A DNA stretch of 64,000 nucleotides, from positions 293,560 to 357,559 of the IMG/VR virus record IMGVR_UViG_3300044701_000569; one strand, written 5' to 3'. Below are positions 1 to 63,424 of this stretch, piece by piece. Within the stretch, counting starts at the first letter, position 1. The number at the start of each line of letters is the position of its first letter. Under the pieces are notes generated by a model, which had not been told where the DNA came from, ran no database searches, and saw only the letters and a program-made list of their open reading frames with translations. The translations under genes and the position numbers were made by a program.

Positions 1-278
1 CGTTCAATTCGTTCACTAGCCTTAGGCTCTGCATAACTCACAGGCAAGTCGTTTACTTCAACGATACGAGCTTTACGGATTCTACGGAAGGGAAATTCTG
101 GGTTGCCTGTAGTAAGTCCAATTTCATCTTCTGCAAACCACTTATGGCGAATCACAGTGCCTGAGTATACATTAAACTCCTGTGTAACAACGCCCTGTGC
201 ATAGAGGTGTCGTTTGTCCCACAGAATGTTCTGTACACGGATTGTAACAGTATTACCCTCTTTAAGCAGTTCGCTCAT
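1..278 (-). CDS. hypothetical phage protein (runs off the window start)
   Basis: ATG at 278 with GAGG upstream, open to base 1 (MSELLKEGNTVTIRVQNILWDKRH...). Not in the ORF track. Downstream of the promoter at 308-335. Confidence 0.7.
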   Translation of the reverse strand, partial: MSELLKEGNTVTIRVQNILWDKRHLYAQGVVTQEFNVYSGTVIRHKWFAEDEIGLTTGNPEFPFRRIRKARIVEVNDLPVSYAEPKASERIE

Positions 279-20774: not shown

Positions 20775-21121
20775 TTTTCCACCTTTGTATTTCGTTTATC
20801 TCTAAAGAGTTTAACATCCTTCATTGCACTTGTCAAGGCCGTAGCATAATTTAAAGCCTGTTGTTCACTCATGCAAATGGTGGTTTCGTGTTCCAAATAT
20901 CCTTTTGTAAGTAGATTCCAAAACTGTCGCCAGCGAGTTATACTCCAAAAAGGACTTTTCACTGTAACGTGTATGTTTACACTAACACCAGTGTCGTCAG
21001 CTTCTACCCAAAGATGATGTGTATGGTCAGGTTGTCCGCAGCCGCAAACAACATCATAAACTTTTGAGTCTCCCCAATCGTTTACTATTAAAATGCCTTC
21101 TGCTGGTTTTTGTATCTTCAT
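20771..21121 (-). CDS. hypothetical protein (CxC-H motif)
   Basis: VCGCGQPDHTH. Confidence 0.7.
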   Translation of the reverse strand: MKIQKPAEGILIVNDWGDSKVYDVVCGCGQPDHTHHLWVEADDTGVSVNIHVTVKSPFWSITRWRQFWNLLTKGYLEHETTICMSEQQALNYATALTSAMKDVKLFRDKRNTKVEK

Positions 21122-21849
21122 TGTGCTTTTGATTCTATACTGAGATCCTTGCTCTTTAGAGCAAACATATGGTCTCGTAGTTTTTCCATTAGCCCTTGAT
21201 TTCTCAACATTTTAAAAACTAGGTTTTCAACTGAAAACTCTCCGCCTGATTCTAGTCCAGCTTTTCTCATTCTCTTTAAGTCATCCCATTGTTGATTCAC
21301 TTCAACGAGACTGTCTGACTTAAGAACAGTTTTGATTTCGCCACTGTACTGTTTGTATTTTCTTTGTACATCCTGACTGTTAATGTCAACCTGTTCTTTC
21401 TTAGGTTCACTGACCCATTTATCTTTGAGAACACTGTAGATACCTAGACTGTGATGCTCTTGTGCTACATCCTGTACATAGACTTCAACGTCAATGCCTT
21501 TTACTTTGATATCATACTGTGTGTTGTATTGATTCTTCTTAGCATCAAATAATTCTGGAAACTCAGGCTCATTTTCTGGAACTTTAGCTACTATATGTAG
21601 ATCAATGTCACTGTATTTTGTATAGGAATAAGCAGCATTAGATCCGCTCACTGTTATATCAACTAACGATATCTTAACACCTATAAAATCTATAAAGTCT
21701 TTGATTACTTCCAGTAGACCCTTACGTATCGCTGGGTGCATTCTTCCACTGTTATCCCACAGTTTAGGATTTAGATCGTCGTGAAACACTACAGCTGAAT
21801 CCACGCTGACTTCATTTTTTTGCGATACGGTAAACTCTTTAATTAGCAT
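21118..21849 (-). CDS. Pol-beta superfamily nucleotidyltransferase
   Basis: SGSNA...SDIDLH...VEVYVQ; TAAATA 4 nt before the ATG. Confidence 0.85.
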   Translation of the reverse strand: MLIKEFTVSQKNEVSVDSAVVFHDDLNPKLWDNSGRMHPAIRKGLLEVIKDFIDFIGVKISLVDITVSGSNAAYSYTKYSDIDLHIVAKVPENEPEFPELFDAKKNQYNTQYDIKVKGIDVEVYVQDVAQEHHSLGIYSVLKDKWVSEPKKEQVDINSQDVQRKYKQYSGEIKTVLKSDSLVEVNQQWDDLKRMRKAGLESGGEFSVENLVFKMLRNQGLMEKLRDHMFALKSKDLSIESKAQ

Positions 21850-41620: not shown

Positions 41621-41647
41621 AAAAAGAAAGGCGCCCTAGAGCGCCTT
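41621..41647 (-). terminator. intrinsic terminator ending the tmRNA transcript
   Basis: AAGGCGC-tctagg-GCGCCTT then TCTTTTT. Confidence 0.75.
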
Positions 41648-41999
41648 CCTCACTGTTCTGTTGCCCGGTAAGTGAACCGCGAACCTGCTGTTTCTTAGGC
41701 AGCTAGCGCAAAGTTGTTGTCATTGACAGCAACGTTTACGAATAGTTCAGGAGTAAAGGTTTTTGTGCCGTTTACTTGATTTTGCTTCTTTTACGGAGAT
41801 CGCCTACCGTGTTGCCGTCTCTACTATCTCACCCAATCGATCCTAGTTCAGCCCCATCATAAAAGGACAATTAGCATGACAGTTACAATGACTGTAAATC
41901 CTACTAAAAATCTTACTAGATCGTCTTCCATAACTATCCTTTTATGGTGGAGCTGGCGGGAGTTGCACCCGCGTCTTGAATGCCTTCGCTTTGAAGGGA
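41648..41999 (-). ncRNA. ssrA: circularly permuted (two-piece) tmRNA
   Basis: Acceptor piece ...GCGGGTGCAACTCCCGCCAGCTCCACCA ends at 41945 and precedes the coding piece, which starts GGGGCTG at 41855. G3:U70 pair present. Tag frame ends NDNNFALAA-TAA at 41695. Outer ends approximate. Confidence 0.92.
41857..41931 (-). CDS. putative 24-aa TM peptide inside the tmRNA intervening segment
   Basis: AAGGA SD, ATG, MEDDLVRFLVGFTVIVTVMLIVLL, TGA. Confidence 0.5.
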   Translation of the reverse strand: MEDDLVRFLVGFTVIVTVMLIVLL

Positions 42000-42012
42000 T
42001 TACAACAATTTC

Positions 42013-42216
42013 TTAAACAGGCTGAATGTTACTTGCCTGTTGTCCTTTTGGACCCATTGTGATTTCAAATCTTACACTCTGTCCTTCTTGTAGGCTTTTG
42101 TAGCCACTAGAAGAAATTTGTGAAAAATGAGCAAACACATCTGCGCCGCCATTGTCTGGAGTAATGAAACCAAAACCTTTAGCTTCGTTAAACCATTTTA
42201 CTTTACCTGTTACCAT
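42013..42216 (-). CDS. cspA: cold-shock protein
   Basis: GKVKWFN, KGFGFI (RNP1), VFAHFS (RNP2). Confidence 0.96.
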
Positions 42217-54619: not shown

Positions 54620-55042
54620 TCAGAATATAAATTTATCTAAATCCTGTTTTAAGGCCTTGGATTTAGCTATGGAAATGTCTAACCTGTGTAGTCTAGATTC
54701 TACTACACTTATATCGTCTGTTCTACGGATACGGTTTCTATAGTAAAGAGCATCATTATAGTGCTTTAGTAGCTCTAGATCTACATTCATGATACGATCA
54801 ACGTGATTCCTACCCTCAGCTAGGCTTTTAGCCAGCGCAATAGCAGAGATCTTAAAATTAGTTACTCCAACTCGTGCGTTCTTAGCACAGTCATATACTT
54901 GGTAACCTTTAGAATTCTTACGGATAGCATAACTACCAATACGAATACTGTTACCTCGCTGATAGGGCATAATTATACTGGAGTTTTCAAGCCCAGTTTC
55001 AATTAGTTCCATAAGTTCATCTGCGACAGAGTCAAAGTTCAT
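54620..55042 (-). CDS. hypothetical protein
   Basis: 140-aa ORF. Confidence 0.75.
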   Translation of the reverse strand: MNFDSVADELMELIETGLENSSIIMPYQRGNSIRIGSYAIRKNSKGYQVYDCAKNARVGVTNFKISAIALAKSLAEGRNHVDRIMNVDLELLKHYNDALYYRNRIRRTDDISVVESRLHRLDISIAKSKALKQDLDKFIF

Positions 55043-55235
55043 TTTTCTTCACCATGATTTGATTGTTATAAACAATCTTAGTTATAAGACTTTTCCTAAC
55101 TAGATCGATAATAATGACTCGCTCTCTTTCGTTAAAGCTGGACAAGGGAGCAATGTCATTCATGTTCTCTAATATAGCACGTTCTTCGTTAGTTGTAAAG
55201 ACACTAAATCCCTTGATCAGCTCATTTATTTTCAT
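55032..55235 (-). CDS. hypothetical protein (MKINE N-terminus)
   Basis: 67-aa ORF. Confidence 0.7.
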   Translation of the reverse strand: MKINELIKGFSVFTTNEERAILENMNDIAPLSSFNERERVIIIDLVRKSLITKIVYNNQIMVKKNEL

Positions 55236-55474
55236 ATGTTCTTAACCATTACCTTGTCGCCAGGTTTGATACCTCTATCTACTGTTCCTTTGACCTGTGT
55301 GTCCAATGTTAGGTTGCCGCGGTCGTCTTTGGTTATAGCGCCGGGCTTGCTAGGATCTTTAGGCACTACGGTCTTGACCTGTGTCTTTGGATCTACAAGG
55401 ACTGTTTCCTTATCATCATCGCTCATGATTTGAAGGATTGGACTTTGTTCTAATACAATTTCATTTATTTTCAT
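55232..55474 (-). CDS. hypothetical protein (MKINE N-terminus)
   Basis: 80-aa ORF, AAGGA SD. Confidence 0.7.
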   Translation of the reverse strand: MKINEIVLEQSPILQIMSDDDKETVLVDPKTQVKTVVPKDPSKPGAITKDDRGNLTLDTQVKGTVDRGIKPGDKVMVKNI

Positions 55475-55569
55475 TTTTCTGTCCTTGAAAGACTCTATTT
55501 GAATTTTTCGACAGATGGTGAGTCCGTAAAAAAATCCACGTAATAATATAATATTATTTAGCGTGAATT

Positions 55570-55806
55570 TTAGAACTTCATTAATATTGTAACGACTGTG
55601 GTTAAGAGTCCAGCGACTATTGTTGTAGCTGCGCCAACTATAACTTTGACTAGGCTGTTTTGGCCCTGACGCATGTCTTCATGTATGGTAGATATCTTTT
55701 GTTCTACGCTGGTTAGTCTATCGTCTAGCTGCTGGTAGCGAAGTGCGCACAAGTCAACGTGTGCTTCTAAACTTTGCTTTTCTAAACTTGTGGGTGCAGA
55801 TGACAT
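55570..55806 (-). CDS. coiled-coil plus C-terminal TM protein (XhlA/holin-like)
   Basis: SLEAHVDLCALRY, coiled coil, hydrophobic C-terminus. Confidence 0.65.
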   Translation of the reverse strand: MSSAPTSLEKQSLEAHVDLCALRYQQLDDRLTSVEQKISTIHEDMRQGQNSLVKVIVGAATTIVAGLLTTVVTILMKF

Positions 55807-55876
55807 CTACTTTAATCTCCGTAATAACACAAAAAAGGTTAGTGTGCCTAGAAAATAGATGCCTGAGTGGATTTGT

Positions 55877-56272
55877 TTAACTGATAGTATTTAGTTCAAA
55901 CACTATATTTTTTGTCTGTTTGTTCTTGCTATCAAATACACAATCTTTTAGTTTAATAGTTTCTTGTAGTCCGTTTATTATAGGAACTAAATGAAAATCA
56001 CTGTCCAGCATTTCAACTGTAAGACCACCTTCGTACTCAACATTAAACTCCCCACTCCATACAGTGTGTTCGCCCTTGTAACTTGATCCAAACCTAAAAT
56101 CTTTTACACTAACAGTTTCTGTTTTTAGATTTTCTAAATCAATGTTTACCCGCAGTGTGAGCGTTTGTAGAAATGTTAGATAGTTCTGTTGCTGATGCCA
56201 AACAGGATCAGATTTGTTAAAACGTGCATCCGTTTTGGTTATATCAACTAGGGTATAGAACTTAAATCTCAT
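55877..56272 (-). CDS. hypothetical late protein
   Basis: TLVDITKT...QQQNY; TAAATA 5 nt before the ATG. Confidence 0.75.
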   Translation of the reverse strand: MRFKFYTLVDITKTDARFNKSDPVWHQQQNYLTFLQTLTLRVNIDLENLKTETVSVKDFRFGSSYKGEHTVWSGEFNVEYEGGLTVEMLDSDFHLVPIINGLQETIKLKDCVFDSKNKQTKNIVFELNTIS

Positions 56273-56290
56273 GTAGTTATTTACAGAGAT

Positions 56291-56320
56291 AAAAAAAACG
56301 CCACTATAAAAGTGGCGTTT
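56291..56320 (-). terminator. intrinsic terminator
   Basis: AAACGCCAC-ttttata-GTGGCG-T8 on the minus strand. Confidence 0.8.
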
Positions 56321-56348
56321 CCCTTCCCATCCCTAGGAATATTAGCTA

Positions 56349-56720
56349 TTAAGCTAGTGTGATGCTTGAAGCTTCTGCAACAGTTGTGTCGTTAGCTGCT
56401 ACTGCTGTACCTAGTCCTAGTGCTACTACTAGGTGACGTAGACGAACCTGTAGGCTTGCTGCACTCTGAGCATGACCGTCCATAATCACGTGGATTGTGC
56501 CGCTGTTGTCATTGGTTACGAAAACCATCTGTCCGCCAATTTCACGTAGGATTAGGTCTAGTTCTGAACCGTATGCTGCGTCATAGCTGCGTAGGTCAAT
56601 AGCTGTGTTGCTGTCGTCCTTGATTGTGATCAAGAAAGCCTTGAGCTGAACTGTGCTGTAAATTGTACCAGCTGAAGGTACTGTATTAGCTTTTGGTGTA
56701 AAATCAAAAGTCGCTGCCAT
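56349..56720 (-). CDS. small putative virion structural protein
   Basis: Strong TAAGGAG SD, TAAATA promoter, own terminator, Ala/Thr-rich. Confidence 0.65.
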   Translation of the reverse strand: MAATFDFTPKANTVPSAGTIYSTVQLKAFLITIKDDSNTAIDLRSYDAAYGSELDLILREIGGQMVFVTNDNSGTIHVIMDGHAQSAASLQVRLRHLVVALGLGTAVAANDTTVAEASSITLA

Positions 56721-56809
56721 TTTATATCTCCTTAAATGTCTCTAATGGCAAACTCACTACTCTGTGAGCTTGATATAATTATTTAGTCAAACGGAGAAAA
56801 ATTGGGTTG

Positions 56810-57754
56810 TTATTGCTTATTTTTGGCTCTTTTGTGAAGAGCTCTTAGATTCTGTATATAACCAGGGCCAGCCTGTACTATATCGTCTATCATGTCAATA
56901 ATAGGCATATAAGCTTCTACGTAGGCTGCAGGTATAGTTCTACCTTCTATTGCACTAATTAAAAACTGTCTAGTTAACATGAGTTTATCAGCGCCTACAA
57001 GATATCTATACATTGCGATATCTTTATTAATAATGCTTATATCTGGTTTGCTTACTGTAGGTTCAGGATCAGTAGCAAACTCTTTCTCCATGTTGTTGTT
57101 TGCAGCCCAGTGTTCAAAATCTGTAATGATATCCGAACTGCGTAGTTTTGCTCTAACAGCAAATATTAATCGTGTAGCAACAACTCGCTTGTCCTGTCGT
57201 GTAATATGCTGCCAGTTACCAAGCTCTCTACGTATTTCTTTATAGTCTTTATTTGTTATTCTAAGTATAGTTTCAAGTTTAATGAACAATGCAGTTGGCA
57301 GTGTTGGCTCTTTTCCCTGTGCTAGATCTCTAATGTATCTATTGAGATCTAGCATAGGTATTTTAGTTTTCTTTTTAAGAGCTATAGCAGCATCAGGGTC
57401 TTTTAGTTTTTCTTGAGCACTATCGCTGCCTACTAAGAAATAGATAAAATTGTAGAGGTCGGTACCCATAATACGATAGAACTTGTACAGTTCAAAACCT
57501 GCTGTTTTCTTTGCGTAGTCTCTTACTGTGGCTGCATAAGAAGGATAGCGGCGTAGTGTTTCTAATACCAACAGCATTAGGTATAGTCGTTCACAGCAAT
57601 CTGAATAGGTCAGTTTCTGTGAACTACCGTCGTCTTTGGTCATCCTTGACTCAAAGATATCTTGTAGGAAAGAAAATGGTTTATCTTTGGAAGGTGTAAT
57701 TTCGTGACCCCCTTCCATCAATGCCCACTCTAGTGCTGTGTATCGCTTTTCCAT
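56810..57754 (-). CDS. hypothetical late protein
   Basis: 314 aa; ALMEGGH motif. Confidence 0.75.
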   Translation of the reverse strand: MEKRYTALEWALMEGGHEITPSKDKPFSFLQDIFESRMTKDDGSSQKLTYSDCCERLYLMLLVLETLRRYPSYAATVRDYAKKTAGFELYKFYRIMGTDLYNFIYFLVGSDSAQEKLKDPDAAIALKKKTKIPMLDLNRYIRDLAQGKEPTLPTALFIKLETILRITNKDYKEIRRELGNWQHITRQDKRVVATRLIFAVRAKLRSSDIITDFEHWAANNNMEKEFATDPEPTVSKPDISIINKDIAMYRYLVGADKLMLTRQFLISAIEGRTIPAAYVEAYMPIIDMIDDIVQAGPGYIQNLRALHKRAKNKQ

Positions 57755-57758
57755 TTAA

Positions 57759-58247
57759 TTACTTTGCGTTGTTCTCAATCCAAGTCATTACATCATAGAG
57801 ATCGTTTACAAGTTGATTAGGACCAACTGGTTCACCTTGTCCTAGTTCTGCTTGCTTGCTCTGCTTGCGAATAGCTGCTAAAACATTAATAGCATCGTCA
57901 GCGGTCTTGATGTAGGCTTCACGAATTGTGCTTTCCTGCTCAACAGGATCTTTAGCTTTACGCACAGGACCTGCACTCTTTAATTGTGCCTGCGCCATGC
58001 CCATTAACTTTTGTATTGCCTTTGGATCTAAGCCAGTGCGCTTAACAACATCCATTAGACTATTAGGACCAAATGGTGTACCAAATTCTGTCATTGCACT
58101 GCCTAAGCTGGCCATTTGATTTGATTCAACATCATCTTTGTGACTTGCTGCCATGTCCATTAGAGTGCGACCTAGCTCTGCTAGTTTTGCTTGCTGCGGA
58201 TCAATGCTAGTTTTTTGCATCTCAACCATTACATCTTTAATTTTCAT
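57759..58247 (-). CDS. hypothetical late protein
   Basis: 162 aa; MKIKDV N-terminus. Confidence 0.75.
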   Translation of the reverse strand: MKIKDVMVEMQKTSIDPQQAKLAELGRTLMDMAASHKDDVESNQMASLGSAMTEFGTPFGPNSLMDVVKRTGLDPKAIQKLMGMAQAQLKSAGPVRKAKDPVEQESTIREAYIKTADDAINVLAAIRKQSKQAELGQGEPVGPNQLVNDLYDVMTWIENNAK

Positions 58248-58259
58248 TTTATGTTTCCT

Positions 58260-59354
58260 TTAGTTTGGTGTCCAACGATGACGTGGAACTAATTTTGTTT
58301 TAGAGCCTAGAGCCATATAGCCTTCGCCACCTTGCTCTCCGCCTGTTGATGCTTTTACATCCGCATCAGCTGCATCCAACTGATCAATTAGATCGTTTTT
58401 TACGCTCATAATCTTATTTACTAATTCAAATACAGCAGGCAGTGCGTTAGGATTAGCTTTGTTTAGCTCTGCTATCTTTGCCTGCTTGCCTGCGCTTACT
58501 GTTGATGCCTGTAACCAATTAAAGAATCCATCAGCAGATAAATTGTCTAACTGTTTTGCCTTTGCTGTTTGATTCACAAAGGTATAGATAATGTTCTTCA
58601 TGTCACTCAGCCCTGCCACGGGTGCTAGGAATTGATCAATAGCTTTACCATTCTTAGCTGCTAAAGATCTAATCTCTTTTACGTGGCTGGTGTCAACCTT
58701 AGGCGTGTGAGTTACATAGGTTTGTCCTAGTACTACTGCTTCTGGACTGTTTAGTTCAGCAATGTTCTCAATTGGAGTTCCGTTCTTGCTGCCAAACTCA
58801 TCATACTTCATGTGTACAACCACACCAACCTTGGCTCTTGCTGAACGCTTGCCTAGGTCACTGCTTGGGTCAACTGTATAGGTTACCTTGTTAGGAGTAA
58901 ATTGAATACCTTCTTTGGTAGACTGAAATGGTTTGCCTGGATGCCACAGTAGGTCTCCGTAGACATATCCTCTAAAGTCTGGTGGTGTACTCTTTTCCAT
59001 GATAGTGAAGATGCCGGCCATGTCATTACCAAACTTTTCTCTCCAGTCTTCGCCTTTGCCAGAGCTTTTAATAAAGTTAGCCAGGTCTTCTGGGTTTGTG
59101 CTTTTGTTTCTTCCCCAGCCATTCTTGCCAACAAGAACAAACTTGCCGTCTTCTTCTCTACCCCAATACACAGTAGGATTACCGTCCCACTTGATACTAA
59201 CATCACTGGTGTCTTTGCCTAGCTTGTCTAATACATCTGCTGCTTCGTTAGCACCTGCGGCACCATCAACAAAAACTAAATCTTCAAGGTGCTGATAGTC
59301 TCTACCAACCTTGGCAGCTTCTGTTAACAATGTTTTAAATTCTTGAAATCTCAT
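58260..59354 (-). CDS. KxDG ligase/nucleotidyltransferase-like protein (DUF6267-like)
   Basis: HLEDL, IKWDGNP, YGDLL, FTPN, GEGY, KLVPR. Confidence 0.7.
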   Translation of the reverse strand: MRFQEFKTLLTEAAKVGRDYQHLEDLVFVDGAAGANEAADVLDKLGKDTSDVSIKWDGNPTVYWGREEDGKFVLVGKNGWGRNKSTNPEDLANFIKSSGKGEDWREKFGNDMAGIFTIMEKSTPPDFRGYVYGDLLWHPGKPFQSTKEGIQFTPNKVTYTVDPSSDLGKRSARAKVGVVVHMKYDEFGSKNGTPIENIAELNSPEAVVLGQTYVTHTPKVDTSHVKEIRSLAAKNGKAIDQFLAPVAGLSDMKNIIYTFVNQTAKAKQLDNLSADGFFNWLQASTVSAGKQAKIAELNKANPNALPAVFELVNKIMSVKNDLIDQLDAADADVKASTGGEQGGEGYMALGSKTKLVPRHRWTPN

Positions 59355-60133
59355 CTGTTGAATGCTCCAGAACTCATAGAGCTGTGATTGAGCAGAGCAC
59401 CACTTAGTTCTCTAATACGATTTAGGTGCTTGTCAGCTAGTGTTTCTTTCTGTGGATACTCTTTCCAAGCAGGATCTGCTTTTAGGTCTGCTAGGAACTG
59501 CTGTCCTCTAGTGCCTAATGCTGCAACAATAGATTCTACTGATCCTAGATCCTTTGCGCCTGCGTTTGGTCCTATCAGTGTCTTAGCTATTTCATCTAAG
59601 TCTGTTGATACTATACTATCATCAGCTCTGTTTAGCAAGCCTTTAAACGCACTCCACTTCATATCTTTTTCTTTAGCAAGTTTAGCCATTGCTAACTGTT
59701 TGTTTAATCCCTTATAGGGACTGCCTTTGGGTATATCATGAATGTGAAACTTGCTTACCACTTCACTGTTTGGCACCAGCATTAAATCCACCTGGTGTGA
59801 CTGATCACCTACAGGAACTTTAACGTGTACATTGATACCAATTACCTTAGTTTCAAAGCCTGCTTTCTTAAAGAGATCTTCAAGTGCTTTCTTAGTTGGC
59901 AGTGGCTTGTCTGTGCCCAGTGCTGCCATTACGGCATCTTGGTCTACAATTACATCCAAGTCGCCGCTCTTTTTACCTGGTGTAGGGGTTGCGCCTGAAC
60001 CAATTGGAAAGCCTTTAATCTTGATGTTATCAAGTACTGAATTAATAGACTTTGTTAGTTGAGGAATAACAGCATGATCAAAATCGCTGGTTCCATCAAA
60101 TACATTGCCACCTTCTTTAAGAATTGCCTTCAT
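59351..60133 (-). CDS. Pol-beta superfamily nucleotidyltransferase-like protein
   Basis: IGSG...SGDLDVIVD...QVDLM; EGGNVF near the N-terminus. Confidence 0.75.
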   Translation of the reverse strand: MKAILKEGGNVFDGTSDFDHAVIPQLTKSINSVLDNIKIKGFPIGSGATPTPGKKSGDLDVIVDQDAVMAALGTDKPLPTKKALEDLFKKAGFETKVIGINVHVKVPVGDQSHQVDLMLVPNSEVVSKFHIHDIPKGSPYKGLNKQLAMAKLAKEKDMKWSAFKGLLNRADDSIVSTDLDEIAKTLIGPNAGAKDLGSVESIVAALGTRGQQFLADLKADPAWKEYPQKETLADKHLNRIRELSGALLNHSSMSSGAFNR

Positions 60134-60386
60134 TTCTTTCCTTAGATTCAATTATTTTAGTTATAGCTCTGCGAAACTTACGTGGATCTCCGCTTTTAAT
60201 TGAATTTAAAAAGCGACGCTCAAGCTCTGAAGCAGTTTCTACATCATATGTTGAATGTATTCTGCTCAGTAAATTAATGGAACTTTCAATAATGTTGTTG
60301 GCTGTGGTATCGATAAAACGATCCGCATCACGCTTTCCATAAACACTGTTCAGCTCTTCTAATATACTTCTAGTACGTTTTCTCAT
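60117..60386 (-). CDS. hypothetical late protein
   Basis: MRKRTRSILEEL; SD and TAAATA upstream. Confidence 0.75.
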   Translation of the reverse strand: MRKRTRSILEELNSVYGKRDADRFIDTTANNIIESSINLLSRIHSTYDVETASELERRFLNSIKSGDPRKFRRAITKIIESKERNEGNS

Positions 60387-60531
60387 TGCACTTTCCTATA
60401 TTATTATTTAGTGTAATATAAAGAGATTAAATCTTTTTAGTAAATCCTTGACTTTTATCATGGTTTACACTATATACTAAATACGTAGCTGATGTTATCA
60501 GCAACACAACACACACATATAGAGGAAAAAC

Positions 60532-60675
60532 ATGTTAAGTAAACTATTCAGACGACTGTTTTGTCAGCCGTCAGATCTCGAAGCTTTTATTCTAAGCAAG
60601 CGTCCAACTAATGCAGCCGAAGTAGACTATTGGACAATCCAGTACAATCATACTAACAAGGGAGCATGGTTATGA
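60532..60675 (+). CDS. small protein, 47 aa
   Basis: GAGG SD; MLSKLFRRLFCQPSDLEAFILSKRPTNAAEVDYWTIQYNHTNKGAWL. Confidence 0.7.
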   Translation: MLSKLFRRLFCQPSDLEAFILSKRPTNAAEVDYWTIQYNHTNKGAWL

Positions 60676-60806
60676 AGACGCTCACACACAGATTTTTCAG
60701 CGGACTCTTTTTCTTTTTTGAAGCAATGGGCAAGGCTCGAGCTGCTGCAGAACTTTCACGTATGGGCAAGTACGAAGAAGCTAAACGTATAGTATCTCGA
60801 GATTAA
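60672..60806 (+). CDS. small basic protein, 44 aa
   Basis: GGAG SD, ATGA-coupled; MKTLTHRFFSGLFFFFEAMGKARAAAELSRMGKYEEAKRIVSRD. Confidence 0.7.
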   Translation: MKTLTHRFFSGLFFFFEAMGKARAAAELSRMGKYEEAKRIVSRD

Positions 60807-60807
60807 A

Positions 60808-61017
60808 ATGTTCCATGAATTCAAAACAGTTGATCATAACATATTGGGTTCATGGTGCAATCGTTGGGGCTACGTCACAACTATAGCAACGTTTAACAAC
60901 AACGATATTGTTGTTAAAACCATAACACCATATAAAACCAAATTGATTAGACACTTTGATGATTGGGAAACCTGCGAAGAGTTTATTGATTTGATAGAAG
61001 AAGATAGGAGATATTAA
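60808..61017 (+). CDS. hypothetical protein
   Basis: 69-aa ORF in the plus-strand operon. Confidence 0.65.
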   Translation: MFHEFKTVDHNILGSWCNRWGYVTTIATFNNNDIVVKTITPYKTKLIRHFDDWETCEEFIDLIEEDRRY

Positions 61018-61112
61018 TGCCAAAAACTGAAACAGTATCCAGAATTGGATTCGTTACAAGTCTTTCGCTGATGATAACACTGTATTACAGTTTTCTAATC
61101 AGTGTATTTTAA
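61017..61112 (+). CDS. small TM peptide, 31 aa
   Basis: AGGAG SD, TAATG coupling; MPKTETVSRIGFVTSLSLMITLYYSFLISVF. Confidence 0.55.
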   Translation: MPKTETVSRIGFVTSLSLMITLYYSFLISVF

Positions 61113-61197
61113 CACTTGACAGAACTAAATAAACTGCTATTATTAGCACTGTAATAGAAATATTACAAGTCATACACACACATACAGGAGAAATATA

Positions 61198-61509
61198 ATG
61201 ACTACAGATTTTACAAAGCAAGCACAAGAAATGGCAACTCAGTTTGCCGATCAGATCAAGGCAGCAGTGCCTCAGGTCAAGTTTAATAAGAATGGATATG
61301 AGATCCGCACACAGATGCTAGAAATGGCACAGAATCAAGTGTGGCAGGACTTTCATGCTCGTTGGGGACAGTTTGAGTCTTCAGTTAGCAAGGATGGTAA
61401 GGAAGTGGTAACAAAGGTAGAAATGCCCGCAGTTCCTGGTGCTGACAAGGTGCTAGAAGCTGCTGAAAAGTTCTACAATTTTGTAAATAACACTAACACA
61501 AATAAGTGA
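61198..61509 (+). CDS. conserved hypothetical phage protein
   Basis: NKNGYEIR...AEKFYNFV; AGGAG SD; dual promoter at 61116-61143. Confidence 0.8.
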   Translation: MTTDFTKQAQEMATQFADQIKAAVPQVKFNKNGYEIRTQMLEMAQNQVWQDFHARWGQFESSVSKDGKEVVTKVEMPAVPGADKVLEAAEKFYNFVNNTNTNK

Positions 61510-61573
61510 TGTTAAAAGTATATTAGTAATAAGGGCATAGCCCGTTATTTAAGATGTAATTATATACAGAGCA

Positions 61574-61612
61574 GCCCCTGGAGTAGCAGTACTTCAGGGG
61601 TTAATCTTTTTT
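61574..61612. terminator. terminator between convergent genes
   Basis: gcccctggagta-gcag-tacttcaggggt followed by a T-run. Confidence 0.7.
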
Positions 61613-63170
61613 AGAATATTAAAGCGTAGACGAAAAGATCATCTTGACTTATATTAGAAGCTAGGCGATTGTTTATATCTGTGAGATCACTAATATCTAC
61701 TGGAATAGTTGGCTTGTTTGTTAAGTCTGCGTAACTGCCAGAAAACAGTGTAGGCGTATCGCTAAGGTCGTTGTAACTTGTAACTAGTGTTGGTTTATTA
61801 GTTAGGTCTTCGTAGCTTCCTGAAAACAATGTTGGAAGTCCAGTTAAGTCGTCATAGCTGCCGCTGAACAATGTAGGAAGATCTGTTAAATCATTATAGC
61901 TGACAGTTGTTAAGTAACCTTGAGTTGTTACATAAGTTTCAGTAGCATATCCTGTTAGAGCAGAAATAGTAATAAATCCTGCGTTATTTGTTAAATCTCC
62001 GGTGTCCGAAGGTATTGTTGGTTTATTAGTTAGATCGTTGTAACTGCCGCTGAACAGAGTTGGTTTACCGCTCAACTGGTCATAAGTGATGTTAGGAATA
62101 TCTCTGCCATCAAAATTCAATCGTTTGCCTGTGCCAATGTTTGTCCAGTATTGAGTATTGCTTGTTGGCAAACTTTCGTTATCAAAGTTTGCAACATATA
62201 TGCTGCCATTATCATACACAGCATCCCCTGCAAGATAGCGTGTATTTTCTCCGCCAGGTAACAGTGTATGATTAGCGGTCCATTGCGGGGCAACTGCTAA
62301 CGAAGTTGGTTTATCAGTTAAGTCATTATAGCTGCCGCTGAACAGTGAAGGTAGGTCAGTCAACTGATTATAGCTAGTAACTCCTCCTGAAACTGTTACA
62401 CTTACAATTCCATCAGCATCAATTGTTAGACCAGAACCTATTTTAATTCCGCCCAGTATGCTGTTGGATGCTTTTGGTAAGCTATATCCTGCACCACTGG
62501 AAGAAAGAACATTGTTGTTATCACTAAGTTGGCTGATGTCAGTTGGTATAGTGGGTTTATCAGTCAGTTGAGTGTAACTTGTAATTAGGGTAGGTTTATT
62601 AGTTAGATCGTTGTAGCTTCCGCTGAATCCGTCTACAGTACCATCTGCATTTTTTGTTAGGCCTCGACCAATTTTAATTCCGCCTTTTACAGATCCACTA
62701 GCTTCCGGAACGTCAGTGATAAAACCTCTACCGTTTACAAATGATTCAGTAGCATATCCGGTTAATGCTGTATTTGTAATAAAACCAGCACTGTTTGTAA
62801 GCTGGCTGGTATTTGTTGGTACAGTTGGTTTATTTGTTAAGTCGTCGTAGTTGCCGCTGAATAGGGTTGGCTTGTTTGTTAAATCTGCGTAACTGCCGCT
62901 AAATCCGCTTATAACCTGATTGTTAATTCTAATAGTAGTGCCATCAACTTTAACACCACCTTTGGTTGTTGCCGATGCAGTGGGTAGTGTATAAGTTACT
63001 CCACCGCCTCCATCAGTGCCGCCTGTTGATAACGGAACACCACCAGGAGTTTCACCGTCAGACAGTCTTAGTACGCCGTCTGAAATATCAAAGAAAAGGT
63101 TTCCAACTTCGCCTACGAAAACGTCAATATCAGCATTGACCAAACCGGCTTTAATTTTACGAAACGCCAT
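61611..63170 (-). CDS. repeat-rich virion fibre protein
   Basis: About 13 (LF)SGSYxDLTxKPT repeats, three PxAS...GG(V/I)K repeats, internal W..RYLAGDAVYDNG.IY (CBM5/12-like). Confidence 0.8.
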   Translation of the reverse strand: MAFRKIKAGLVNADIDVFVGEVGNLFFDISDGVLRLSDGETPGGVPLSTGGTDGGGGVTYTLPTASATTKGGVKVDGTTIRINNQVISGFSGSYADLTNKPTLFSGNYDDLTNKPTVPTNTSQLTNSAGFITNTALTGYATESFVNGRGFITDVPEASGSVKGGIKIGRGLTKNADGTVDGFSGSYNDLTNKPTLITSYTQLTDKPTIPTDISQLSDNNNVLSSSGAGYSLPKASNSILGGIKIGSGLTIDADGIVSVTVSGGVTSYNQLTDLPSLFSGSYNDLTDKPTSLAVAPQWTANHTLLPGGENTRYLAGDAVYDNGSIYVANFDNESLPTSNTQYWTNIGTGKRLNFDGRDIPNITYDQLSGKPTLFSGSYNDLTNKPTIPSDTGDLTNNAGFITISALTGYATETYVTTQGYLTTVSYNDLTDLPTLFSGSYDDLTGLPTLFSGSYEDLTNKPTLVTSYNDLSDTPTLFSGSYADLTNKPTIPVDISDLTDINNRLASNISQDDLFVYALIF

Positions 63171-63199
63171 CCCTTAGCCCCCTATACGATATTTATCGG

Positions 63200-63424
63200 T
63201 TACTGTTTAGGAATTGGTTTCTCGTCTTGTGTTAGTTTTTGTATTACAGGACTGATTTTGCCTTGATCAGCTTTCTTTAATTCAATGTCTTGCTGAAGTG
63301 GAGGAACAAACACTGGATTCTGATCAAAGTCTTTTGGATCTTTTGGTGGCAGTTCGTTAGAAGACTCGCCGTCTAGCTTGTCAATAATATCGGCCAAAGC
63401 CCTCATAAATTCTGCTGCTCTCAT
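63200..63424 (-). CDS. hypothetical late protein
   Basis: MRAAEF, FVPPLQQ; TAAATA 5 nt before the ATG. Confidence 0.75.
   Translation of the reverse strand: MRAAEFMRALADIIDKLDGESSNELPPKDPKDFDQNPVFVPPLQQDIELKKADQGKISPVIQKLTQDEKPIPKQ

Follow-up and report, generated by a model that had tools for sequence, protein, structure and literature searches.

A family X polymerase-like nucleotidyltransferase and a ligase-like DUF6267 protein form a functionally coupled pair, possibly delivered from the head of a marine jumbo phage

Two adjoining genes in the virus record IMGVR_UViG_3300044701_000569, the genome of a marine jumbo phage of ~358 kb, encode a nucleotidyltransferase (NTase) that resembles family X polymerases (P0001) and a ligase-like protein of Pfam family DUF6267 (P0002). 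The window analysed here is the last 64 kb of this 357,559-bp record (64,000 nucleotides, positions 293,560 to 357,559), which CheckV rates as complete, and coordinates refer to the window unless stated otherwise. It is evident that P0001 and P0002 are functionally coupled, because DUF6267 is naturally fused to NTases in other proteins and adjoins them in related loci. We propose that the two are coupled, head-delivered enzymes that remodel and seal polynucleotide ends, a reading to which we give slightly less than even confidence. Since they are fused elsewhere and carry N-termini that resemble head-targeting leaders, the pair looks like a strand-break repair kit that would be injected with the phage DNA. 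The combination of a polymerase-type NTase with a ligase is of a known kind; what would be new is the involvement of an uncharacterised, widespread phage family and, as a plausible feature, delivery in the capsid.

P0001 (59351..60133, minus strand; 260 aa) and P0002 (58260..59354, minus strand; 364 aa) were delineated as open reading frames (ORFs) and translated, and P0002 was assigned to DUF6267 by Pfam. The stop codon of P0001 overlaps the start codon of P0002 in an ATGA at 59351..59354 (minus strand), where the junction letters are aacagATGAgattt; this overlap, read directly from the sequence, is the ATGA coupling given in a preliminary description of the stretch. The ATG at 60133 was taken as the start of P0001 rather than the TTG at 60151, because the ribosome-binding site AAGGAAAG lies directly 5′ of this ATG and the start sites of homologues agree with it. 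The preliminary description had also recorded the motifs GS...DxD...D and KWDG...GD...EG...K in the two products, and both turned out to be conserved across relatives, to a degree that appears well beyond chance.

The catalytic signature of P0001 consists of G45-S46, D58-x-D60 and D116 (59786..60001, minus strand) and is invariant in the P0001 alignment; the same residues are retained in gp253 of the jumbo phage PA5oct. The three aspartates (D58, D60 and D116) are also invariant in 36-37 distant fused relatives. A word search identified 839 related metagenomic sequences, and nothing was found by tblastn against isolated phages. P0001 belongs to no Pfam or PHROG family, RlaP (PF10127) is absent among its Pfam matches, and a comparison with the sequences in the Protein Data Bank (PDB) gave chance matches only. 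We also considered P0001 as a relative of the cyanophage “cytidyltransferase” whose gene adjoins DUF6267; this was rejected, the two being unrelated.

The AlphaFold2 model of P0001 (predicted local distance difference test score, pLDDT, 89.9) is composed of a palm, a thumb and C-terminal helices. Foldseek matched it to Pol lambda in the PDB (E 4e-7), and VIA-align matched it to Pol beta, Pol X of African swine fever virus (ASFV), TdT, Pol lambda and Tth PolX, with Z of 10-11 and a root-mean-square deviation of 3.4-3.6 over 160-180 residues. For ASFV Pol X, Z was 10.4 and 161 of its 176 residues were aligned. Terminal uridylyltransferases, CD-NTases and CCA-adding enzymes align to P0001 over ~100 palm residues only. 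The nearest viral models in BFVD are uncultured phage proteins, followed by giant-virus family X polymerases. P0001 is without the 8-kDa and fingers domains, and its matches span palm and thumb only, as in ASFV Pol X. P0001 is not CCA-adding-like or cGAS-like: among its structural matches, family X DNA polymerases are both the best and the longest, aligned over palm plus thumb; the CCA- or cGAS-like fold raised in the preliminary description was not borne out by Foldseek and VIA-align. As modelled, P0001 is a minimal Pol X-type enzyme of palm and thumb, extended at its C-terminus by a helical tail.

The same matches bear on a DNA-specific form of the injected kit, which we consider possible but not probable. 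P0001 would then fill short gaps and P0002 would seal nicks or join ends of the incoming 358-kb genome, broken perhaps by host nucleases or, in sea water, by sunlight or oxidation, and the pair would be the phage counterpart of ASFV Pol X and its ligase. This alternative draws on the family X DNA polymerases as best matches of P0001, thumb included, on the alignment of 161/176 residues of ASFV Pol X, and on the giant-virus Pol X enzymes that come after the phage relatives in BFVD; packaged enzymes would also adjoin DNA. The likeness to the ASFV pair, which serves base-excision repair, lies in a minimal palm and thumb family X enzyme accompanied by a ligase in a large DNA virus. The pairs differ in that P0002 has no OB or DNA-binding domain and no sequence relation to the ASFV ligase, that the host here is bacterial, and that no apurinic/apyrimidinic (AP) endonuclease partner was seen.

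P0002 belongs to DUF6267 (PF19782; E 3e-26, 93.1 bits against a cut-off of 27, residues 21-360), a family for which a word search gave more than 1,500 relatives and a profile search 1,623 clusters at 50% identity. Our literature search returned no mention of DUF6267. DUF6267 was encountered in viral sequences only: all the ESM Atlas structural-neighbour clusters of P0002 are viral, and DUF6267 homologues are present in T4-like cyanophages, where they are annotated as hypothetical. Conservation and fusions were counted in the best 150 DUF6267 representatives, clustered at 50% identity. The motifs of P0002 are K55-W-D-G58, G133-D134, E344-G345-Y and K352-x-K354. Conserved at 85-100% among the representatives are H22-x-E24-D25, K55-W-D57-G58, G65-R66, D134, F152/P154/N155/Y159, N261, K319, E344-G345 and K354-x-V-x-R358, and the conserved residues follow the order of motifs I, III, IIIa, IV and V in ligases. 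For K55, D57, G58, D134, E344, G345, K354 and R358 the range is 86-99%. Motif I (59181..59192, minus strand), which holds the presumed nucleotidyl-lysine, is 99% conserved in 141 aligned representatives. The motif IV/V-like C-terminal strands, E344-G-Y and K352-x-K354-L-V-x-R358 (58293..58325, minus strand), were recognised by their conservation and by three ligase alignments that span residues 55 to 344/345.

The AlphaFold2 model of P0002 (pLDDT 86.9) comprises a beta-rich domain (residues 52-212), a helical bundle formed by helix 23-47 and helices 225-328, and three C-terminal strands with EGY and KxK. The helical insertion of ~100 residues that precedes motif IV (residues 225-328; 58371..58682, minus strand) is evident from the secondary structure of the model, from matches to helical bundles and from the invariant N261 and K319. 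Neither an OB domain nor motif VI is present in the model, in which the chain ends just past motif V and the sole extra domain is helical. Foldseek gave weak matches, mostly to ligases (best E 0.06, TM score ~0.2). On re-alignment with VIA-align, residues 55-212 match the adenylyltransferase domains of ligases with Z of 4.2-5.8, and RNA and DNA ligases make up 45 of the top 50 re-aligned chains, among them Trl1 (5.8), Rnl3 (5.4), Naegleria Rnl (5.1), T4 Rnl2 (5.1), REL1 (4.9), T4 DNA ligase (4.8) and Lig1 (4.8). The ligase alignments begin at residue 55 of P0002, and the three that extend to 344/345 include that with T4 Rnl2 (34..205); the alignment start in each ligase chain is what we take to be the motif I lysine, or a position next to it. 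The model thus points weakly but consistently to a covalent nucleotidyltransferase of the ligase type that lacks an OB domain and into which a helical bundle is inserted.

This architecture is of concern for the DNA-specific alternative, since P0002 is without an OB domain and, to our knowledge, every known DNA ligase has one. RNA ligases head the structural list of P0002, yet they are separated from DNA ligases by less than 1 Z unit. A canonical ATP-dependent DNA ligase is already encoded separately in the genome, no Ku homologue was found, and no AP endonuclease is tied to the pair. The RNA_ligase (PF09414), NAD-ligase and Ku families are all absent from the genome.

The opposite specialisation, an RNA-specific kit as put forward in the preliminary description, seems to us a minority possibility: damaged RNA 3′ ends would be trimmed up or rebuilt by P0001, in the manner of RlaP, and sealing would fall to P0002 as an RNA ligase. 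This is consistent with the build of P0002, in which an adenylyltransferase domain is joined by a helical accessory domain and OB is lacking, and with the top structural matches, namely Trl1, Rnl3, Rnl5 (Z 5.1) and Rnl2. Motif IV of P0002 reads EGY, which is also the motif IV of Rnl1 and Rnl2. P0002 further resembles T4 Rnl1/Rnl2 and fungal Trl1 in its KxDG lysine and collinear motifs III, IIIa, IV (EGY) and V; it differs from them in that its helical domain is inserted ahead of motifs IV/V, whereas theirs is appended after these motifs, in the invariant HxED before motif I and in showing no profile-level similarity. The separate DNA ligase in the genome and the precedent of RlaP also favour RNA, and delivery as finished protein would bypass the translation block imposed by tRNA-cleaving defences. 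RlaP is an RNA-ligase-associated Pol-beta NTase that extends damaged RNA 3′ ends by one or two nucleoside monophosphates ahead of their repair (PMC12776372). The bacterial operons of RlaP (PF10127) and RNA ligase are similar to the present pair in that a Pol-beta superfamily NTase is genetically tied to a ligase; they differ in that P0001 is family-X-like and without PF10127, that P0002 has no RNA-ligase profile match, and that the present pair is phage-borne, often fused and equipped with head-targeting-like leaders. Against the RNA-specific alternative, P0001 is neither RlaP nor CCA-adding-like and looks like a DNA polymerase, neither a Pnkp-like kinase/phosphatase nor an RNA_ligase family gene turned up in genome or fusions, and no link was seen between the pair and the tmRNA gene ~16 kb away.

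The functional coupling of P0001 and P0002 is most apparent from fusions and gene order. NTase-DUF6267 fusions were found in 33 of the 150 representatives and fusions in the reverse order in another 4 (37/150 in total). At least 14 of the 150 contain a different NTase domain, with the HIGH motif (GxFxPxxxGH), and phrog_455 covers DUF6267 together with a cytidyltransferase. We then counted gene neighbours at 80 related IMG/VR loci, of which 76 were informative and 4 were cut. A P0001-type gene lies directly upstream of DUF6267 on the same strand at 53 loci, a HIGH-motif NTase gene lies directly downstream of DUF6267 in place of the P0001-type gene at 21 loci, and neither partner is present at 2 loci, so that DUF6267 adjoins one NTase partner at 74 of the 76 informative loci. 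In cyanophage S-MbCM7, similarly, the DUF6267 gene abuts a “cytidyltransferase” gene. The enzyme kinds named in the preliminary description, a Pol-beta superfamily NTase and a covalent NTase/ligase of the KxDG type, are upheld, and as a functionally coupled pair. A prediction of the complex of P0001 and P0002 scored 0.00, which is no evidence either way. Polymerase and ligase domains also share one polypeptide in bacterial LigD, as they do in the 37 NTase/DUF6267 fusions; LigD (polymerase, ligase and phosphoesterase) differs in its primase-type polymerase, in its OB-containing ligase and in working with Ku, no homologue of which was found here. Because DUF6267 has ligase residues, a rough ligase fold and near-constant fusion or adjacency to NTases, a testable biochemical hypothesis can be put forward for this family.

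The preliminary description had left out the third partner, the HIGH-motif cytidylyltransferase-like NTase. The copy in this genome is a 363-aa protein (G000 224780-225871, or L007 4781-5872; minus strand, outside the window) with matches to phrog_3041/395 and to positions 420-609 of phrog_455. Its homologues were found in 557 phage records, from cyanomyoviruses and Rak2/PA5oct-like jumbo phages, and one cyanophage homologue is annotated as a nicotinamide mononucleotide (NMN) adenylyltransferase. Triple fusions of HIGH NTase, PolX-like NTase and DUF6267 also occur (P0278, P0294, P0373 and P0292), and P0278 additionally matches DUF2608. A language-model search with the C-terminus of P0317 retrieved cytidylyltransferase-like clusters alone (score ~0.82), which we treat as a lead only. 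DUF6267 is also fused to a Cu/Zn superoxide dismutase in a 65-member viral cluster of the ESM Atlas, and these fusions hint at oxidative damage, as the DNA-specific alternative would have it.

It could also be argued that the three NTases act on substrates other than polynucleotides, making, recycling or transferring a nucleotide cofactor or signal (for example, through chemistry related to nicotinamide adenine dinucleotide, NAD+, by the NMN adenylyltransferase-like HIGH enzyme) or nucleotidylating host proteins after injection. We regard this as quite improbable. It would account for the persistent fusion or adjacency of DUF6267 to the HIGH-motif NTase and for the NMN adenylyltransferase annotation in one cyanophage, and T4 is known to inject a protein-modifying enzyme, Alt (PMC5694885). 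The resemblance of P0001 to family X polymerases over thumb and palm, and the confinement of P0002 structural matches to ligases, argue against it.

The proposal that the pair is head-delivered rests in part on the N-termini. P0002 opens with MRFQEF...LTE↓A (the arrow marks the putative cut), and its leader MRFQEFKTLLTE (59319..59354, minus strand) resembles the T4 capsid-targeting sequence (CTS), with an LTE end before AAKVGR. MRFxEF and LTE↓AA are conserved in P0002 relatives, with a variable linker of 0-48 residues between them, and residues 1-19 are disordered in the model. P0001 has a putative propeptide of seven residues, MKAILKE (60113..60133, minus strand), whose hydrophobic-x-Glu (hxE) end precedes the invariant GGNxF and would be the site of cleavage; residues 1-7 have pLDDT below 50, and E7-G8-G9-N10 is near-invariant. 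Some P0001 relatives have a longer MKIxDIL plus basic leader ahead of the same KE↓GGN site. The capsid-targeting-like N-termini previously described for both proteins thus hold for P0002, and P0001 shows just the seven-residue ILKE↓GG propeptide. HIGH-motif enzymes begin M-x-x-R/K-x-L/I-x-E-A↓, and the copy in this genome begins MRLRQIFEAE↓GK, which is again CTS-like. At the internal junctions of fusions, hxE↓[AG] is retained before each domain, in disordered sequence. In some DUF6267 leaders there is an insert that is Cys-rich or basic (WVCGKC..PC or KYKRSINCSNPKGFSQRAHCAGR). Pfam DUF3008, to which KYKRSINCSNPKGFSQRAHCAGR is similar, also occurs C-terminally in a 220-aa protein of this genome (L007 2540-3202).

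The genome has head genes of the T4 type, in which the major head protein gene (phrog_138) adjoins a prohead protease gene (Peptidase_S77, PF03420, E 8.5e-27; phrog_207, E 3e-57). In T4, the capsid-targeting leader MKTYQEFIAE is removed after it has targeted internal proteins to the prohead (PMC8442874), and Alt is cut at ITE-6, with the loss of six residues, and at LTE-619, the related proteases all cutting after Glu (PMC5694885). The present proteins are therefore similar to T4 internal proteins and Alt in the M-K/R-x-F/Y-Q-E-F...hxE↓ leader and in the T4-type prohead protease of the genome, and differ in that the putative cargo consists of nucleic-acid enzymes and that their packaging is putative. 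The pattern M[KR]x(1-2)[EDQ][FILMV] opens 16 ORFs of the genome, as compared with 4.7 ± 2.0 in shuffles (~3x), and these ORFs cluster at G000 223405-226203 and at 55032-63424 of the window, the P0001/P0002 region. They may represent a set of head-targeted proteins. One of these ORFs encodes a 362-aa protein in which a pterin-4a-carbinolamine dehydratase domain is found, and several others encode small proteins. We know of no nucleic-acid enzymes described among T4 head proteins, and our literature search returned no report of phage PolX or ligase enzymes carried in the virion.

A comparison with PA5oct bears on packaging as well. PA5oct gp253, whose annotation reads “structural protein, ESI-MS/MS”, is homologous to P0001, with the catalytic residues kept (hhalign probability 95%, E 3e-8). 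The gene string that contains P0001 and P0002 is headed by an 89-aa gene (60117..60386, minus strand; phrog_11854, E 4e-16), a homologue of “virion structural protein” genes of jumbo phages, with tblastn matches in PA5oct-like, Erwinia, Yersinia and Sinorhizobium jumbo phages. Its PA5oct homologue, gp259, lies 4.5 kb from gp253 amid genes annotated as structural and detected by mass spectrometry (MS). No DUF6267 was detected by a profile search of PA5oct. Three genes from gp253, gp256 (NC_071039.1 150524-151864; L010 8119-9459) has HLDNL...KIDG...GD...IPNxxEY...EGYV...VKIVDK in the order of DUF6267; it aligns with DUF6267 at the C-terminus only (hhalign E 1e-3, probability 19%), has no Pfam or PDB match and may be a very divergent DUF6267, which we take as a lead only. 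The PA5oct proteins at the syntenic positions, gp257 and gp258, were examined as counterparts of P0002 and P0001 and rejected, as they show no similarity. Considering together the leader similarity, the T4-type protease, the hxE sites, the enrichment of the leader pattern, the gp253 annotation and the neighbour from a structural family, we find head packaging of P0001 and P0002 plausible, with a chance a little better than even. The virion delivery proposed in the preliminary description is thus defensible from T4 CTS likeness, the prohead protease and the gp253 annotation, with cleavage and packaging being only inferred.

If the pair is delivered in this way, the following sequence of events could be envisaged. 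The T4-type prohead protease would cut the leaders after hydrophobic-x-Glu, and the mature enzymes would reside inside the head and enter the cell together with the DNA. There they would be active ahead of any phage gene expression, on damage inflicted by the host or the environment. P0001 would add one or a few nucleotides at a 3′-OH through the metal site formed by D58, D60 and D116, and P0002 would become nucleotidylated on K55 and then seal the break between 3′-OH and 5′-phosphate, with its helical insert in the place of the accessory domain of other ligases. The HIGH-motif cytidylyltransferase-like NTase, which has the same kind of leader, would be the third member of this functional set. 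As for the substrate, RNA ends and DNA nicks, gaps or ends appear equally probable, each somewhat short of even, and other substrates rather unlikely; no evidence was found in support of tRNA or tmRNA, the target suggested in the preliminary description.

Several results weigh against the proposal of head-delivered end-repair enzymes. With an E value of up to 1, P0001 matches no PolX family in Pfam, DUF4756 alone being returned at chance level. The match of P0002 to the ligase fold is weak, with Z below 8, the caution line of the tool, and a Foldseek E value of 0.06. No ligase family of Pfam (PF01068, PF09414 and the like) matched P0002 with an E value of up to 1, P0002 and the DUF6267 alignment profile gave only chance matches to PDB sequences, and hhalign found no relationship between a diverse DUF6267 profile and the DNA ligase of this phage. 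The support for P0002 as ligase-like is accordingly good but not conclusive, because Z stays under the caution line and no profile links it to ligase families; ligases predominate in the Foldseek and VIA-align lists, as the ligase reading of the preliminary description would have it, but the matches are weak. No P-loop kinase motif, HAD motif or end-healing kinase was found in the extra regions of the fusions, and the superoxide dismutase fusion fits a role of DUF6267 as a cargo carrier as well as a role as an enzyme. As regards delivery, the leader is absent from the cyanophage DUF6267 homologues, hxE[AG] before each domain could belong to the domain and not to a cleavage site, the enrichment of the leader pattern is modest, neither PA5oct gp256 nor the cytidyltransferase gp177 bears an MS-detected flag, and the cyanophage DUF6267 gene sits among replication genes and is not annotated as structural.

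The last of these points would be explained if the proteins were not virion-delivered at all and instead acted on nucleic acids or nucleotides in the cytoplasm, the T4 CTS likeness being coincidental or serving another purpose. We hold this to be an alternative of limited probability. In cyanophages, the DUF6267 and cytidyltransferase genes, annotated as hypothetical, are located between uvsX, gp41 and gp61, and gp256 and gp177 lack the MS flag. Moreover, no T4-type late promoter (TATAAATA) was found 5′ of the gene string, and the label of “late genes” in the preliminary description is unsupported for the pair because this promoter is absent upstream. A cytoplasmic role is at odds with a leader that is conserved though disordered, with a variable linker and an LTE↓A end, with the occurrence of the same leader type on HIGH NTases and on a protein whose family carries a virion-structural annotation, and with the annotation of PA5oct gp253 as MS-detected in virions.

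If P0001 and P0002 are indeed packed in the head, phages would deliver nucleic-acid repair enzymes as protein, which would be relevant to the survival of sunlight-damaged marine phages and to the evasion of DNA- or tRNA-cutting defences that block the synthesis of repair proteins. A broader and more speculative reading, which we think rather unlikely, is that a set of three NTases, namely a PolX-like end-extender, a DUF6267 ligase and the HIGH enzyme, is carried in the heads of many large phages (marine, freshwater, and enterobacterial or pseudomonad) and injected for repair before expression, and that the HIGH enzyme might regenerate the nucleotide cofactor of the ligase. Were this true, it would be injected machinery for counter-defence or repair of a new class, and DUF6267 would have its first function.

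P0001 and P0002 are situated in a tight, co-oriented string of genes, and a 336-kb relative has the identical order (88 aa, NTase and DUF6267). Two closely packed genes follow downstream (56810..58247, minus strand), ORFs of 162 aa and 314 aa whose products have the N-termini MKIKDVMVE... and ...ALME↓GG and yielded no Pfam or PHROG matches. A related phage has an 827-aa mosaic protein (L021 8669-11149) that opens with a CTS-like leader and a HAD-like IFDIDDTLF motif, and one of its internal segments is matched by residues 1-25 of the 314-aa product; no Pfam match was found for the mosaic protein with its DxDxT motif. Some segments of the mosaic, among them the N-terminus of the 314-aa gene (56810-57754), are present in this genome as genes of their own, which suggests that polyproteins may be cut at hxE↓G sites. 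A blastn search of the region against isolated phages returned zero matches.

The genome also encodes rIIA, ribonucleotide reductase and a transfer-messenger RNA (tmRNA). The tmRNA gene (41625-42070, minus strand) was identified by ARAGORN as a permuted tmRNA with the tag VAVNDNNFALAA, and its Rfam scores are 127 bits for tmRNA_permuted and 108 bits for beta_tmRNA. The second NTase that had been reported at 21118 was recovered at 21118-21849 (minus strand) with a match to Pfam NTP_transf_2 (E 6e-5, above the cut-off); this Pol-beta superfamily protein is unrelated to P0001 and falls in phrog_36119. Finally, a 519-aa protein (61611-63170, minus strand) contains many copies of the repeat SGSYxDLTNKPT(L/I) and has weak matches to tail-fibre PHROGs.

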